Below, in pieces: positions 43,343 to 61,947 of a DNA stretch of 64,000 bases (its first letter is position 1; each line of letters begins with the position of its first letter). The DNA is from Paragordius varius (lineage: Eukaryota; Animalia; Nematomorpha), in NCBI GenBank assembly GCA_964247055.1, contig OZ176052.1, forward strand, positions 12,214,001 to 12,278,000, given 5' to 3'. The position numbers and the translations under genes were made by a program. The notes below the pieces were generated by a model. The model was given only the letters and a program-made list of their open reading frames with translations, had not been told where the DNA came from and did not search any database.

Positions 43343-46300
43343 GGACTTTTTGTTGTGCGGTACCGGCTGACTTAGCTATGGCGGAATTCCATCCAGGCTA
43401 GAATGCAACACGATGATGGTGATGGCAATGGCTTTGCGCGCTGGCAGGGGATTATGTGGCGACTTGGGGAATTGATATACTGCTCTGGAGACGACATGGT
43501 TCTATGATCCTGATCTTTTGGGGAGGGAGGATAATAACTACACTAAACAATCTTCTGCAAAGATCTCCTACTGGGCTCTACGACACCCTCACTGTATGCC
43601 TTTGCCATTCCCGGCATAATTATAGGAGCGCTTGGGGGTGGCGCGTCAGGTAGGCAGAATTGACTTCGCAGCGATTGGATAGCTGTAGCAGTTTGGATGT
43701 AGCTTTAACAGATAAGACTTATTTCATTACCTTATTTAATTACCTTTAATTAATTAATTATCTTTACTATTAACTTTTGTTTGAAAACTCTAATAATTGA
43801 TACTTGCTAATTTGCTGTTTACTTTTACTGAATGACCTTAAGCTATAATGTTGAGCTCGTTTGCATTGTCCTTGCGGGACGGGGCAGTTACCCACCGGGT
43901 CAGCCGTAATAATAATAATGTGCTATGATAATTTATGGAAGGGATACATTCTAGGATACGGTTAGCCTTTACGAATAACCGTTTACGTTTACTACATGAT
44001 AGCTTGATAAGATACCAATCCTATTCATTATAGCCAGCCTTATCTTATTGTTAACGATGATATTAGCCTATCCCGCCCATTGATGCTGTGTCATTCGTTA
44101 GCGATAAGAACCTGTAATTAAATTTATCACTTTAAGATGGACGTCTTATCCTTAAAGGATATTTAAAGAGACTCTATTTTACTACAGTTATTGTCGCCTA
44201 AATTTATAAAAAGTATATTCATGGTAATGCTATAAATCAACGCTCGCTTACCTCATTACTCGCTAGATAATTGGCAACTCATGGTGACGTTTCAAGGATT
44301 TTATTAAAGCAATTTGCAACTCTTGAATATAGTTAAATGTAACATAGATGTGGAAAGCGCATTTGCCAAACTATAAATCAAAATTGAATGCCTGTGATTT
44401 TGCAACTCAGCGTGAATCAACGCGGTATATGAATTTACTACTGATAAGATTATATGTTGATGCGGGAAGAAATGGTTAAAAAATTTTTATTACTCGGCTG
44501 TTATCAGATCCAGATATATTTATTTCATCTATTGTACAATTTTATTACCTCGTTTATACATCCATATGTCTACCCCACATCTTTTAAAATTTGGCTCATG
44601 GAACGTCCCTGGAATTCAGAACAAGTTGGCGGAGGTGAGGACGATCTGCACAAATACCTCCCTCCAACTTCTTTGTCTTCAGGAAACCCGCTGCGCCTTC
44701 AATGGCCGCCAGAAATTTGGTCAACGCTTCACCCTTTTCAGTAGTAAGGCAGAAGGTATGTCTGGAGGTGTTGGATTCCTCGTAAGGCGCAACATTCTGA
44801 GGCGGGTTACTAACTTCGTGCCGCATTCCCATAGACTGGCCGAACTTCACATAAAAATCAACACCAAATGTTACACGCTTATTAGCGCTTATGGACCTCA
44901 TGACATCTCAGAGTACCCTGAGTTTTTGAATGACCTGGGAACCATTCTGGATTCGGTGCCGGCACGGAATCGTCTCCTGATTTTTGGTGATATGAACTGC
45001 CGAGTGGGAAGAAACATATCCTCGTGGGCTATTGGAAGACCTCTTACCACTTCCACCAAGGCAGGTAGACTTCTTGCAACCTTTTGTGATAATCGTCGTC
45101 TATTGATTGGTAACACCTTCTTCCCTGATAGCCAACATGGTCCGTATACAAGAATTGCAAGGAATGTGTGTCCTTCCCAAATTGATTTTGTTATTATACG
45201 GGAGAAAGATCTATCAATGGTGAAGAAAGTTGGCTGCGCGTTATACAACGACCTTATCAGCGATCACCTTTTGATCTGCGCTGAGTTGCAGGTGACCTGG
45301 GTCCCTCCGTGCCCATTCATAGGTCCGAAGTCGGAGTGGGCCACTGTGCTTGGTGAGCTCTCTTCCAGAACCAGGCAAAGACATGTTGTCTACGAGGACT
45401 GGCTATCTGCTGGGACTAAACGATTTCTCCATGCAATACGAAATAAATGTTACACGAGTCGTCGCAGAGCATGGATTAGAGCCAATGCGGATCGCTTGAA
45501 ACGCAAGGACAGGCAGGCGTTTGTTTCCCGATATTTCTCTAAACTGGCGGCTAATGAGAAACACTCAAGAGAGCACTATTCAATGATTCGCTTCCTGCTT
45601 CGACGGCCCAGACCCTGTACTAGTCTACATTCTCATGGCAGGCTCATAATGGATAGCCAGAAGAACGTGATTTCTTTACACCGACATTACACTGATCTTT
45701 TGGGGAATAATAAAATGACCCAGGATGGCGTTGTCAATGATCATCCATTCTCATTGAAATTGAATGAAGGAACATTTCGCCTAGGTATTGAATTTCTACG
45801 AAATTATAAGTGCCCGGGCCAGACCGCAGCGTGGCAGATGCTTGGAAGAAGGAAATAGATTGGTGCACCGACAACATCTTACCTATCATCAATAGTTGGC
45901 TAGAACGTGGCACACTGATGGAGGAATGGGTGGAATGCGAGATAATTAACATTGCAAAACAAGATAAATTAGGCAATCCTAATGATTACAGGGGTATAGC
46001 ACTAGTGAATACAGTGTATAAGGTTTTGGCCAACATTGCCCTGTCTAGACTGCAGTCCTTTGATAATGAACTCCATCACGCAATCTGTGGTTTCAGGCGG
46101 GGAAGGGGAACGATGGATTTATTCTGTTCTCTGGTAATTTTCATCGAGAAAAGCAGGCGACATAAGCACCCGCTCTACTTGGGATTTGTGGATATAACCA
46201 AGGCATTCGATAAACTGGATAGGAAGCATGTCATGCACTTGCTGAAGAGGGTTGATATGGAGGAAAACTTCAAGAACTTTATACTCCACTTGATAATCCG

Positions 46301-47610
46301 TACGCGCAGTCGGGTAGCAGTTGAAACGACCCTTTCGGACTACATATACTCAGAACGAGGCCTGAAGCAAGGATGTCCTCTGTCCCCAAAACTCTTTAAC
46401 TTGGCTATGGACTCAATAGTACGGAAATTATACGCGAGGTTTCCCAACGTCTTTTTCCAGGTGCTCTGCTATGCAGACGACCTTTGCATCTTAACGGATA
46501 CGGAGCTAAACCTGGTGCAGGCCCTGGATCAGCTGGAATCTGAATTGACGCCTATTGGCCTAAATATTAATTATGAAAAGTCAAAAGTGATGATGATAGG
46601 TGGGTCTGATGCGAGGATGTTCAAAACTGTTGGTGGGGAACTGGAGGTTGTGGAGTCCTTTCGATACCTGGGAGTTATGGTGGACAAAAACGGATGCGCT
46701 CTTAACTCACCTCTACTCAGACTTCATTCCGCAAAGCTTATCTTCGACGGATTGCATTGTTTATGGCACTCGAAGGAGGTTGGTCAAAGGCTGAAGTTGA
46801 AAATATTTAAAAGTCTAATTCTCCCTAGAATCCTGTATGGTTTGTCGGTGTGGCCAAATTCTGTCAAACATACCCGCAAGGCTCAGGTATTTGTTAATAA
46901 ATCGTTAAGAGTCATCACGGGCGACATTTACTCCAGGAAAACACGATGCCAACTAGCCACTTGTAAGCTTCATCTAAAAACCGATACGTTGCCTTTAGTG
47001 CTGGGAATACCTCTGTCAAGTCTAAATGTGGTAGCCCACCAACTACGCCATGACGAAATGAGCCCGCTCAGGGCGGCACTAGAATGGAAACTGAATGATC
47101 GTCCAATTTATTGGAAATATAAAAAAACGTGGCTTGGGCGCATGTGTGTTTTCTTACAACGTGTGGGCCTTGCGGAGTCGGAGTTTGTAACTTTAGTACT
47201 GAACGGAGGTTGGAAGGATAAATGTACTCAAATTAAGAAAGAGTTATTAAAAGAAGAAGAAAAGATACATTACGCTAAACGGCAGCGTCGACGAGAACGC
47301 CGGCTTCAGAAACTATCCGCGAAAAAGGCGGACCCGGTGAGGGACAGTCTGTGGTTGTCTGTGACCTTAAATACTTTATTAGGGGGTAAATTACATATAA
47401 TTTAATATTACTATTATTATCGCTCTTAATTTATCGTTCTTGATTTATCTGATACTACATGTTTACTCTATATTCCCTTAGAAGTACCCGGCAATGAAGT
47501 GGCCCCCCCTGCCCTGAAGCGTGTAAAAGCGCAGGAAGGCGGTAAGGGTCGTCCTGTGCGGACAGTGGCGGTTGGGACCATGCCTGCCACACCCTTCTCT
47601 GGATACCTGG
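43343..47610 (+). mobile_element. RTE-like non-LTR retrotransposon insertion (4268 bp) with a 12-bp TSD
   Basis: ATAAGTCTGCTC is duplicated at 43331-43342 and 47611-47622. The opposite foldback arm preserves the empty site, catcATAAGTCTGCTCctagtagac. Confidence 0.9.
44566..47405 (+). pseudogene. APE endonuclease plus reverse transcriptase polyprotein (946 aa if restored), broken by one 1-bp deletion at ~45816-45818
   Basis: Endonuclease motifs GSWNV, LQETR, YGPH, GDMNCRVG, QIDFV, SDH. RT motifs YRGIALVN, GFRRGRGT, FVDITKAFD, GLKQGCPLSP, YADD, FRYLG. Adding one G to CCG-GG-CCA gives KCPGPD, the conserved K.PGPD linker, and fuses the 430-aa and 531-aa ORFs. Confidence 0.93.
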
Positions 47611-59075: not shown

Positions 59076-59621
59076 TTCTAGCATATATGATAAATCATAT
59101 TCTGGTTGTAGTTATAGTGCTTCACAAATTATTGATAAATTCAAAATAAATTTAATAAAACAATATTTGCATTTTTATATTTAAATGAACAACAAAGTAA
59201 AATTTGTTCAATTTTTTACAGCACATAAAATGAGTATAAAAAATTATATTAATTTTAACGGATTAAAATGGGATAATGCGATTAAATATTTATTTAGGGT
59301 ATTTTAAAAAATATAATTCTTGTTTTAACCTATAATTTTTACATGATTCGTTGGTTGAATGTTCATTATATTAAATATTACCCTTATTTAAATGATTTGT
59401 GTTGTATAATCAAACCGCGGCGTGGTTTATAGTTTATTATGAACGAAAATGCGATATAAAAGCAATATTCAGTGGGCCTATCTAACCCTTTACCAGACAA
59501 TAATAATTAATTTTAACTCGAGTTATTTTGTTTTTTGGCAGTTATTTTCTTGTAGAATATAATTAATTCTCGACACGTGAATAGTATAAAAATATATGGA
59601 AATTTATTCAAAAACCTGTCA

Positions 59622-59672
59622 TATAAGTGCCAACGGTTTCGGACACTATAGAGGATGTCCCTCGTCAGCATT
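59622..59672 (-). ncRNA. Decayed hammerhead-ribozyme motif
   Basis: CTGACGA-g-GGACA-tcctctatag-TGTCC-GAAAC-C-GTT. The core and stem II are recognisable; stem I pairs poorly. Confidence 0.6.
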
Positions 59673-60164
59673 AAAAAGAATAAAAATGGATGTGTGAATA
59701 ACTGTTGTTTTTTTTATATATACAATTTTTAAACAATATTTATTGTTGTTTTATTCTTTTATTAAAATATATGGACTCTATTGTTTTCAATTCAAAATTG
59801 TCGCTCCTTCGGTTTTTTTTCATTCTTTTACATTAGTATTGTTGTAAACCTAAAAAATGTTTGTCCCCTCTCAGTGAAAAAAAAGGTTTTAACTTATTAT
59901 TATAATATAGAATAAAGCAACAATAAATATTTTTGAAAAAACTTTATATAACGATTATTCACACATCTATTCTTATTCTTTTTAATGATGACAACGGACA
60001 TCTTTTATAGTAATGGTAATTAACGGATTGGTTATGTTTTGTAATAACAGTTGTTAAAATCCGTAATATAACGATAAAGGATAATTAAATTGAATTAAAT
60101 GAAATTATAAACAGAAATTATAAATTGAATTAAATAAAATTATAAACGATATGTGAAACCCTTC

Positions 60165-60230
60165 GTCAATAGTAATCGCAGACTAGTTTCGTGCTTGTTA
60201 GCACTCATCAGTACGACACAACTATTTGAC
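60165..60230 (-). ncRNA. Type I hammerhead ribozyme (copy 1)
   Basis: Exact reverse complement of 60427..60492. Confidence 0.9.
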
Positions 60231-60426
60231 TTGGAGTTTTCACATATCGATTTCGTATATATATCCAACTTTGCAATTTTGGTATAAATGCAGTTGGTTA
60301 TACGAATTTAAATTAAATTTAATGGTATTTATGAAAATTAAACTGAAAATTTGAAAACAAACTGAAAATTAACTCTAGGGGTGAGCCTAGATTTAGAGTA
60401 TAGCTACTTAGGGATGAAAACTCCAA

Positions 60427-60492
60427 GTCAAATAGTTGTGTCGTACTGATGAGTGCTAACAAGCACGAAACTAGTCTGCGATTACTATTGAC
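60427..60492 (+). ncRNA. Type I hammerhead ribozyme (copy 2), predicted cleavage after C60476
   Basis: Stem I is GTCGTA/TGCGAT plus GTCAAATAGT/ACTATTGAC. Core CTGATGA, stem II GTGC-TAACAA-GCAC, GAAA, and a minimal palindromic stem III (ACTAGT) with a GTC cleavage triplet. Confidence 0.9.
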
Positions 60493-61947
60493 GAAGGGTT
60501 TCACATATCGTTTATAATTTCATTTAATTCAATTTATAATTTCTGTTTATAATATCATTTAATTCAATTTAATTATCCTTTATCGTTATATTACGGATTT
60601 TAACAACTGTTATCTTTTATAGTGTTCGAAATAGTTCGCACTTTTTATTTATTTTATATGCCACGTTTTTAAATGTGTTTCCGTATATTTTTAGTTACTT
60701 AGTTATACCATCCAGTTTGTGCTTTTTTATATTACTTATATCTAATATTTTTATTTGATAAATTAAAAATTGTATAATACATATTTATCGATTGAATCTT
60801 GGATCACAATAGTATTGGTCACTAAAAACCGAGTTTAATGGGAATTATAATAATTTTAAAAAACTCAATTAAGTGGATTTGAAAAAAAATATCTAAATAT
60901 CTTCTAAAAATTCCCCCATGACATATAAGGAAATCACATAAAAGCCAAAACCTTTTAATATATAATTAATTTTAAGGCTTTTAATTTACACTGCATTTAT
61001 TTAATATCACGAAGTACATTTTTACACCTAAAAATGTTTGGTAAGTCTTTAATAATTAAACCTAAATTAGAAAATTTGATAACAATATCATTTCTGGAAC
61101 TTTTTAAATGATACGTGTTAAAATTTAGCAAAAAATTATAAATAATTTAATTTTGAAAATGCTATTTATTTTTTTGTTTTTATGCCAATCCAAACATATG
61201 GAAATTAAGCGACGTTTTGCTCAACTGAAAATGTTATAGCCTTAGGCTATTTTTTATTTTTTTACATTTATATCTCTTATATAAATTTTAACCCTAAAAT
61301 ATTTTTTTCTTGACTTACTTTATCATTAACTGTGTATTGGATGCATTTATACAAATATGATAAAGTTCATAAATACAAAAAAGATTAACTAATTAAACAT
61401 TAAAATTATAAACCTAATACTACCTTTGCTTGTATAGCGGAATTCAATTCCAGCCATTGTTCATTTTTGCAAATGACTTTAATGAGTGTAAGTGCATAAA
61501 GTTTTGGACTAATCTAAAGTTAATATAATAATTATTATTAGATTTAACAAAAAAGCCAGTAACTCACAATAAAGTGGAAAAAATGTAAGAATATTTGTTG
61601 GAGAATTTATAAATGCCTATTATTATATATAAAATTATAAAACTTTGTCGCATATTCGAAGATAAGCGTTATGATAGCTTATATTTGCAAAAAACATAAT
61701 TCAATCGTCGTAATAATTAACATAAATATCCTTCTAAAAATTTTGAAATTATTTAGATTGAACAATAATTTTATCAATAAATTTATTAATTAATCACAGG
61801 AAAACCAAATTAAAAAACCTACGCATATATAAAAAATTTACTTTAAATTCTTGGAGCATAGTGTATGGATCCAATAAATGAATCTAAATGTTAAAATTAA
61901 TAAATAATATAATATATATAATAATGGTTAAAAATATAAAAATATAC

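Follow-up and report, generated by a model that had tools for sequence, protein, structure and literature searches.

In Penelope-like elements (PLEs) a tail of 30-40 bp is often present at only one end of the insertion, together with an inverted 5'-truncated copy, the frequency of this arrangement not being given (Craig et al. 2021, PMC8557442). In vitro, a PLE protein cuts and extends both strands of its target and prefers AT-rich DNA, reverse transcription (RT) beginning at two adjacent internal sites, the spacing of which corresponds to the tail, with initiation that involves no homology with the cut DNA (Frangieh et al. 2024, PMC11167929). Animal retrozymes have been proposed to be non-autonomous derivatives of PLEs (Li et al. 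2026, preprint, bioRxiv 10.64898/2026.07.22.740005). The locus described here is a nest of two elements at 59550-60693 of a 64,000-nucleotide stretch of the nematomorph Paragordius varius (assembly GCA_964247055.1, 110.5 Mb; contig OZ176052.1, positions 12,214,001 to 12,278,000 of the forward strand), from here on referred to as the window, which is AT-rich (~26-28% GC). The nest consists of a younger element, N (60012-60611, 600 bp), inside an older element, O. N is a young, non-coding and hammerhead-carrying element that landed in a hammerhead-like hairpin of O, and it is a typical member of a family of ~190 copies that lacks an open reading frame (ORF). Its features make it probable that N is a non-autonomous PLE retroelement, a retrozyme of the kind without long terminal repeats (non-LTR), which was target-primed on both strands and made its nested hit at a good site.

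N is flanked by an exact target-site duplication (12/12 identities), made up of the A, the 10-nt loop and the T of the GGACA/TGTTC hairpin of O:

60000-60011: target-site duplication, left copy, ATCTTTTATAGT, identical to 60612-60623
60612-60623: target-site duplication, right copy, ATCTTTTATAGT

When the flanks are rejoined (59982-60011 with 60624-60644) and compared with the reverse complement of 59624-59674, 41/51 positions are identical with 0 gaps, while the background for 51-mers across the 64-kb window is 14.6 +/- 3.2 identities and the best unrelated match reaches 30. This confirms what an earlier note on this DNA had read from the letters, namely that deletion of 60012-60623 restores a gap-free match to a partner motif on the minus strand, with the correction that the partner lies at 59624-59674 and not, shifted by 2, at 59622-59672. 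The nested insertion with duplication and the order of events proposed in the note, N being younger than O, were likewise borne out, as the arms of N are 99% alike and those of O ~74-85%. It had further placed the duplication over the stem II loop of a decayed hammerhead, of which the coincidence with the loop stands, while the motif in O can only be called hammerhead-like (no Rfam match). The right junction of N is supported by a read-derived contig (run X1) that covers 60584-60981 with 0 differences. No empty allele, joining 60011 to 60624, is listed among the short Logan contigs, which break inside N, and none of the RNA runs searched for the N/O stretch contains it.

As a ruler for N a natural unit, L019:1501-1947 read in the ribozyme sense, was used, and positions on it are given as S numbers; a consensus was not used for any element. 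The following features of N were found in the window:

60012-60415, minus strand: N left copy, running from S447 down to S73, with the long end (BLAST against the 447-nt unit L019:1501-1947)
60415-60611, plus strand: N right copy, S243 to S413, with the short end and no tail, 99% complementary to 60044-60242
60171-60222, minus strand: N hammerhead, type I (Rfam HH9, E=5.7e-4, 26.7 bits)
60435-60486, plus strand: N hammerhead, second copy (Rfam HH9, E=5.7e-4, 26.7 bits)

Read from left to right, N is laid out as a 32-nt tail (60012-60043), a 199-nt arm (60044-60242), a 172-nt centre and an inverted arm (60415-60613), the two 199-nt arms being 99% complementary to each other. Each arm carries the sequence CTGATGAGTGCTAACAAGCACGAAAC / CTGATGAGTGCTAACAAGCACGAAACTAGTC, aligned by the HH9 model. 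The gathering score of HH9 is 52 and the matches in N (26.7 bits) fall below it because helix III is minimal (AC/GU around UA, with the palindrome ACUAGU); when Rfam was run at gathering threshold, 0 matches were obtained anywhere in the window. The 199-bp arm of the earlier note turned out not to be the terminal inverted repeat of a fixed element and instead is the overlap of two separately 5'-truncated copies, of 404 nt and 197 nt. An internal duplication of 35 bp is common to both arms in the window (60086-60147 and 60510-60571) and its junction 31-mer has no further occurrence in the genome when up to 3 mismatches are allowed; both window arms therefore come from one template, or one was copied from the other.

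The older element could be followed on both sides of N:

59550-59830, minus strand (sense): O left copy (alignment to 29 other O arms; inverted-repeat pairs I2, I3, I4 and I6)
59624-59674, minus strand: O hammerhead-like motif, the better kept one, CTGACGA-G-GGACA-loop10-TGTCC-GAAAC (pattern match)
59831-60011, plus strand: O right copy up to the insertion (rejoined site aligned locally to the left arm); the decayed motif starts at 59982
60624-60693, plus strand: O right copy, part after the insertion, with a short 3' end, ending ...GTATATTTTTA
59540-59548 and 60693-60701: possible decayed duplication of O, AGTTATTTT and AGTTACTTA respectively (candidate)

The 3' end of the left copy of O points to the left and is a long end with a tail of ~37 nt at 59550-59586, and the interrupted right arm has decayed boxes (ATGACAA and GAAAT) and a mismatched stem (TGTTC). 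In a gapped local alignment the rejoined site resembles the left arm of O over ~190 columns, which makes the host O a long inverted repeat in its own right, with its centre near 59830. A search with 59560-60011 as query gave 83 matches with 65-81% identity. The 3' ends of O fall into two classes, a short one ending ...ATATTTTTA (CCATATATTTTTA) and, ~37 nt further on, a long one ending ...ATTCTACAA (GAATTATATTCTACAA). The arms of O in the window are identical in ~74% of the alignment columns (~74-85%) as against 99% for N. From the unequal ends and the inverted copies it follows that O has the same build as N, and from the lower arm identity that it is much older. In 23 aligned copies the boxes and stem II of the motif CTGA(G/C)GA-C/G-GGACA-loop-TGTCC-GAAAC-CGT are conserved. 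The Rfam hammerhead models reported nothing on the O motif even at E<=10 (window and six other loci), and RNAalifold gave the stem II hairpin only and no covariation, and for these reasons the motif is called hammerhead-like and not a verified hammerhead.

The genome contains at least 152 BLAST matches to N; a 28-mer close to the 3' end of N occurs 186 times and a 17-mer 187 times. In most copies query positions 1-404 are matched, at 90-92%, and the copies repeat every 447 nt; the longest ORF in a dimer of the unit is 48 aa. On the ruler the hammerhead core begins at S274 with a predicted cut after S304. A core of 25 nt, CTGATGAGTGCTAACAAGCACGAAA, is letter-identical in almost every N copy of the loci L001-L030, even in copies that are 80-85% identical overall, which suggests that the source copies keep an intact ribozyme.

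Fourteen insertions of N bounded by duplications were reconstructed (within the loci L001-L025). Their duplications are 12-18 bp long with a median of 13, the one in L024 reading either as 7 bp exact or as 13 bp with one mismatch. All 14 consist of two inverted N copies with their 3' ends outward, each of them 5'-truncated, and the head-to-head junction between the copies differs in each of the 14; the possibility that N is inherited as a ready-made palindrome was rejected since the arm junctions differ in every insertion. The identity between the arms is 99-100% in 8 twins and 89-94% in the other 6, and because of these 6 it could not be upheld as a rule that both arms always come from one template. 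Partial tandems were also met, some N arms holding 1.3-2.5 units of 447 nt within one duplication, and single-armed copies show variable truncation points, on one side only. In 12 of the 14 insertions one long end (S445-454) is paired with one short end (S388-418), compared to an expected 0.49 (binomial p=0.005), so that the RT start site used on one strand is not independent of that used on the other. In the first 100 of the 187 places of the 17-mer, 23 convergent +/- pairs were found within ~600 nt and 0 divergent ones. N thus shows the tandem pseudo-long terminal repeats (pLTRs), the inverted copy, the tail at one end and the type I hammerhead with minimal helix III (HH9 below gathering) by which PLEs are recognised, and the tail arising from two start sites is found in O as well, its short and long ends lying ~37 nt apart.

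To describe where N inserts, the 28 nicks of the 14 insertions were aligned, the top strand being cut after the duplication and the bottom strand before it. A G is found at +1 in 15/28 nicks (background 13%, p=4e-7), a T at +2 in 21/28 and a pyrimidine at +3 in 24/28; the dinucleotide GT occupies +1/+2 in 15/28 (background 4.2%, p=6e-14), and GT follows the nick in 12/24 when the window and L024 are left out. The common nick motif of N sites is T^GTY, where the caret marks the nick. The bases preceding the nicks are often ATAT or TTGT, matching the sequence of N past the start site, and microhomology of 2-5 nt (ATAT, TTGT, GT) is present at junctions in L004, L010, L012, L024 and the window (60005-60016). 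At the nested site the bottom strand of stem II of O has GAT^GTCC and, 12 nt away, the top strand has AGT^GTTC (originally GTCC); the stem, being palindromic, carries the preferred word on each strand and at the favoured distance, and hence the apparent precision of the insertion. When a position matrix was derived from the 24 nicks of other insertions, without those of the window, the window site scored among the best 0.09-0.17% of the paired-nick positions within the surrounding 5.4 kb, and in 22 other O copies stem II was among the best 0.03-0.2% of the respective locus. The coincidence with the stem II loop would be explained by the nick-site preference of the N family, sequence rather than structure presumably being read.

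For the enzyme and the order of steps we infer the following. An endonuclease supplied in trans would nick both strands just 5' of G-T-pyrimidine, and the nicks, 12-16 nt apart, would leave 3' overhangs. Each overhang would then prime cDNA at one of two start sites on the N RNA ~33 nt apart, which would account for the tail at one end. Both cDNAs would end before the 5' end of the RNA and be joined head to head, and fill-in of the overhangs would yield the 12-bp duplication. O would have been formed in the same way long before N, and its stem II, GGACA-N10-TGTCC, having T^GTCC on both strands 12 nt apart, would have presented a near-ideal double nick site, for which reason the duplication would coincide with the loop.

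The alternative that survives best is targeting directed by structure or by the ribozyme, in which the N machinery recognises hairpins and cruciforms, or hammerhead-bearing pLTRs, and cuts at stem-loop junctions. It is in line with the window, where the two nicks flank the loop, each of them one base into the stem, and with the published suggestion that PLE endonucleases can recognise PLE sequence itself (PMC11167929). Recurrent targeting of ribozymes or hairpins was not found, as only 1 of ~187 ends is located at stem II of O. When searching genome-wide for GGACA followed by the long end of N within 6-20 nt the window was the only place, and GGACA followed by the short end within 6-24 nt gave 2 places, one of them L014, with ~1-2 expected by chance for a few hundred ends. 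Neither is any N end situated 8-45 nt downstream of any CTGANGA box in a genome-wide pattern search, nor any of the 29 other O arms aligned across the motif interrupted. Two loci were considered as insertions into a hammerhead-like stem and rejected, L014 (GGACATC), the flank of which is without O homology, and L023 (CGACATCC), an unrelated repeat without ribozyme boxes. This host of N in L023 belongs to a further AT-rich repeat family lacking such boxes (L023:1400-2400; L037:930-1190; L041:10-260; L056:90-340). The L023-type repeat is also present near several O copies, consistent with a clustering of repeats.

Hairpins fared no better as a target. DNA folding of 60 nt at the 14 empty sites showed no hairpin excess, with -2.99 kcal/mol compared to -2.90 at 2,100 control positions of these loci (p=0.25); the best duplication-closing stem averaged 3.4 bp against 3.0 bp in controls (p=0.06; 14 sites); perfect stems beside the nicks, with loops up to 100 nt, occurred as in controls (p=0.62); and 10/14 empty sites are without a notable stem. 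Moreover, a stem of 5 bp with a 10-nt loop, mismatched in this case (TGTTC), would be unlikely to extrude from duplex DNA. The targeting option, which the earlier note had left open beside chance, is thus not supported by the genome-wide test, comprising the 14 empty sites and the pattern counts over ~190 ends: the comparison of empty sites with hammerheads and hairpins that it had proposed gave no excess of either, and did reveal one foldback loop that was hit twice. The N family shows no preference for ribozymes, and the nested insertion is an ordinary one at a favoured cutting site. Targeting of ribozymes, which if true would be a mode of target choice new among retroelements, is considered improbable, as is targeting aided by structure.

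A number of points nevertheless weigh against N as a PLE retroelement that met a good site by sequence, and some of them speak for structure. The reconstructed insertions are 14 of roughly 100-150, and when each site in turn was left out of the matrix only 4/13 sites came in the top 1%, with a median rank of 10%. The putative link between N and a PLE protein is drawn from architecture. Two insertions, in L012 (C4) and L024 (C7), carry the same 13-nt duplication, ATATT(A/T)TGGATAT, which begins exactly at the end of the 66-72-bp perfect stem of a foldback repeat, that is at the loop edge:

L012:1485-1497 and 2311-2323: shared duplication of the foldback hot spot
L024:1146-1158 and 1882-1894: shared duplication of the foldback hot spot

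The opposite orientation and the different arm lengths show that these two insertions are independent, and within the ~270 kb sampled the foldback repeat, which is not abundant there, occurs at no other place. The foldback site has ATAT^G and ATAT^C on its two strands, with 4-5 nt of microhomology to the N start, so that an explanation by sequence exists for either orientation. Also belonging here is a second N copy at an O tail, where a single-armed N copy adjoins the 3' tail of O in L020 (L020:1210-1499 / 1501-1863; G000:C5:3803316-3803963), the one place genome-wide in which the O-tail word was found beside an N end. Its N junction falls ~9 nt short of where the long end of O usually lies, and its duplication is not recognisable. 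With it, 2 of ~24 sampled N loci are inside O, a family that makes up roughly 0.1% of the genome; clustering in repeat-rich DNA may be the reason. Under the motif and uniform access we estimate that 0.02-0.2 N insertions would be expected in O stems genome-wide, so a single event in an O stem is by this estimate still somewhat lucky. One event would be compatible with that expectation, given the many windows and features scanned, and better survival of insertions in repeat-rich DNA would raise the expectation.

A doubtful extension of the same idea is that PLE-type machinery acts as a symmetric dimer, favouring AT-rich segments of 12-14 nt between inverted half-sites that contain G/C. If this were true, the loops of hammerhead stem II and of foldbacks would be real hot spots, possibly aided by structure, and a parasite-on-parasite bias would be built in.

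Far less probable is that N is a cut-and-paste DNA transposon, similar to miniature inverted-repeat transposable elements (MITEs) or Mutator-like elements (MULEs), with terminal inverted repeats of 199 bp and duplications of 9-12 bp. Such an element would share the long inverted arms and the 12-bp duplication, but in N 32 nt (60012-60043) lie outside the repeat, so that the arms miss the left end, and neither identical termini nor a fixed internal structure were found when looked for, as the ends are unequal in 12/14, the inner junction is different in every copy, arms with 1.3-2.5 tandem units occur and single-armed copies are truncated variably on one side. That there was no insertion at all, the nest being an assembly artefact or a recombination between repeats, is the least probable reading, since the repeat-rich region and the short-read contigs breaking inside N are set against an exact 12-bp duplication, a host motif restored without gaps, the independent read-derived contig that crosses the right junction with 0 differences and 13 other insertions of the N family with the same build.

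For N as a non-autonomous PLE retroelement, the machinery would have to be encoded elsewhere. GIY-YIG domains (26-27 bits) were found at the end of open frames of 788 aa and 485 aa, and a third in a frame of 225 aa; these frames are candidates that could mobilise N and O:

C1:4914429-4914680, minus strand: candidate autonomous PLE, GIY-YIG, 788-aa frame
C3:3781713-3781961, plus strand: candidate autonomous PLE, GIY-YIG, 485-aa frame
C1:12158515-12158763, minus strand: candidate autonomous PLE, GIY-YIG, 225-aa frame

A search with RVT_1, of which the best 150 matches of 1712 first-look candidates were considered, gave matches only of the type of long interspersed nuclear elements (LINEs). One RVT_1 family is present in many near-identical frames of 1235 aa on C2:1.9-3.2 Mb. 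In the window itself two adjacent ORFs at 44566-47405 (plus strand), matching Exo_endo_phos (E=3.7e-10) and RVT_1 (E=3.2e-37), constitute a LINE with an apurinic/apyrimidinic (APE) type endonuclease and not a PLE.

When N is compared with the described systems, the closest likeness is to PLEs (Evgen'ev & Arkhipova 2005; Arkhipova 2006; PMC8557442; PMC11167929), with which it has in common the pLTR tandems, the inverted 5'-truncated copy and the 30-40-bp tail at one end, as well as variable duplications, AT-rich targets, the nicking and extension of both strands, two internal RT starts and a hammerhead within the repeat. Unlike PLEs, N and O are without an ORF for RT or GIY-YIG and would hence be non-autonomous. 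The nick preference is T^GTY here and ATT in the Anolis PLE, and many N junctions show microhomology of 2-5 nt, unlike those of the in vitro study. With the metazoan retrozymes and PLE hammerheads (Cervera & de la Pena 2014, PMC4209133) N shares short tandem units that lack an ORF and contain a type I hammerhead, the helix III of which is palindromic (ACUAGU) and so short that it would not fold by itself, so that the ribozyme would act as a dimer. In departure from the retrozyme view, the N insertions end 110-150 nt downstream of the predicted ribozyme cut at S304, at fixed start sites, and fixed ends away from S304 fit linear priming of the PLE type and not random initiation on a circle.

In twin priming of L1 the second nicked strand reportedly primes on the RNA as well, giving rise to inverted, 5'-truncated structures within one duplication. 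Inverted, 5'-truncated copies within one duplication are what is seen in N too, but the inverted segment of L1 derives from another region of the one RNA, further upstream, while in N both arms represent the same 3' region, and the twin-primed pattern is the rule in N and the exception in L1. The N insertions are a clean natural data set for the poorly understood integration reaction of PLEs, in which twin priming on both strands as a rule, a tail at one end in 12/14, the T^GTY motif and microhomology are in agreement with the single in vitro study (PMC11167929) and add to it. In Paragordius varius, units that are retrozyme-like appear to insert as linear copies of the PLE type.

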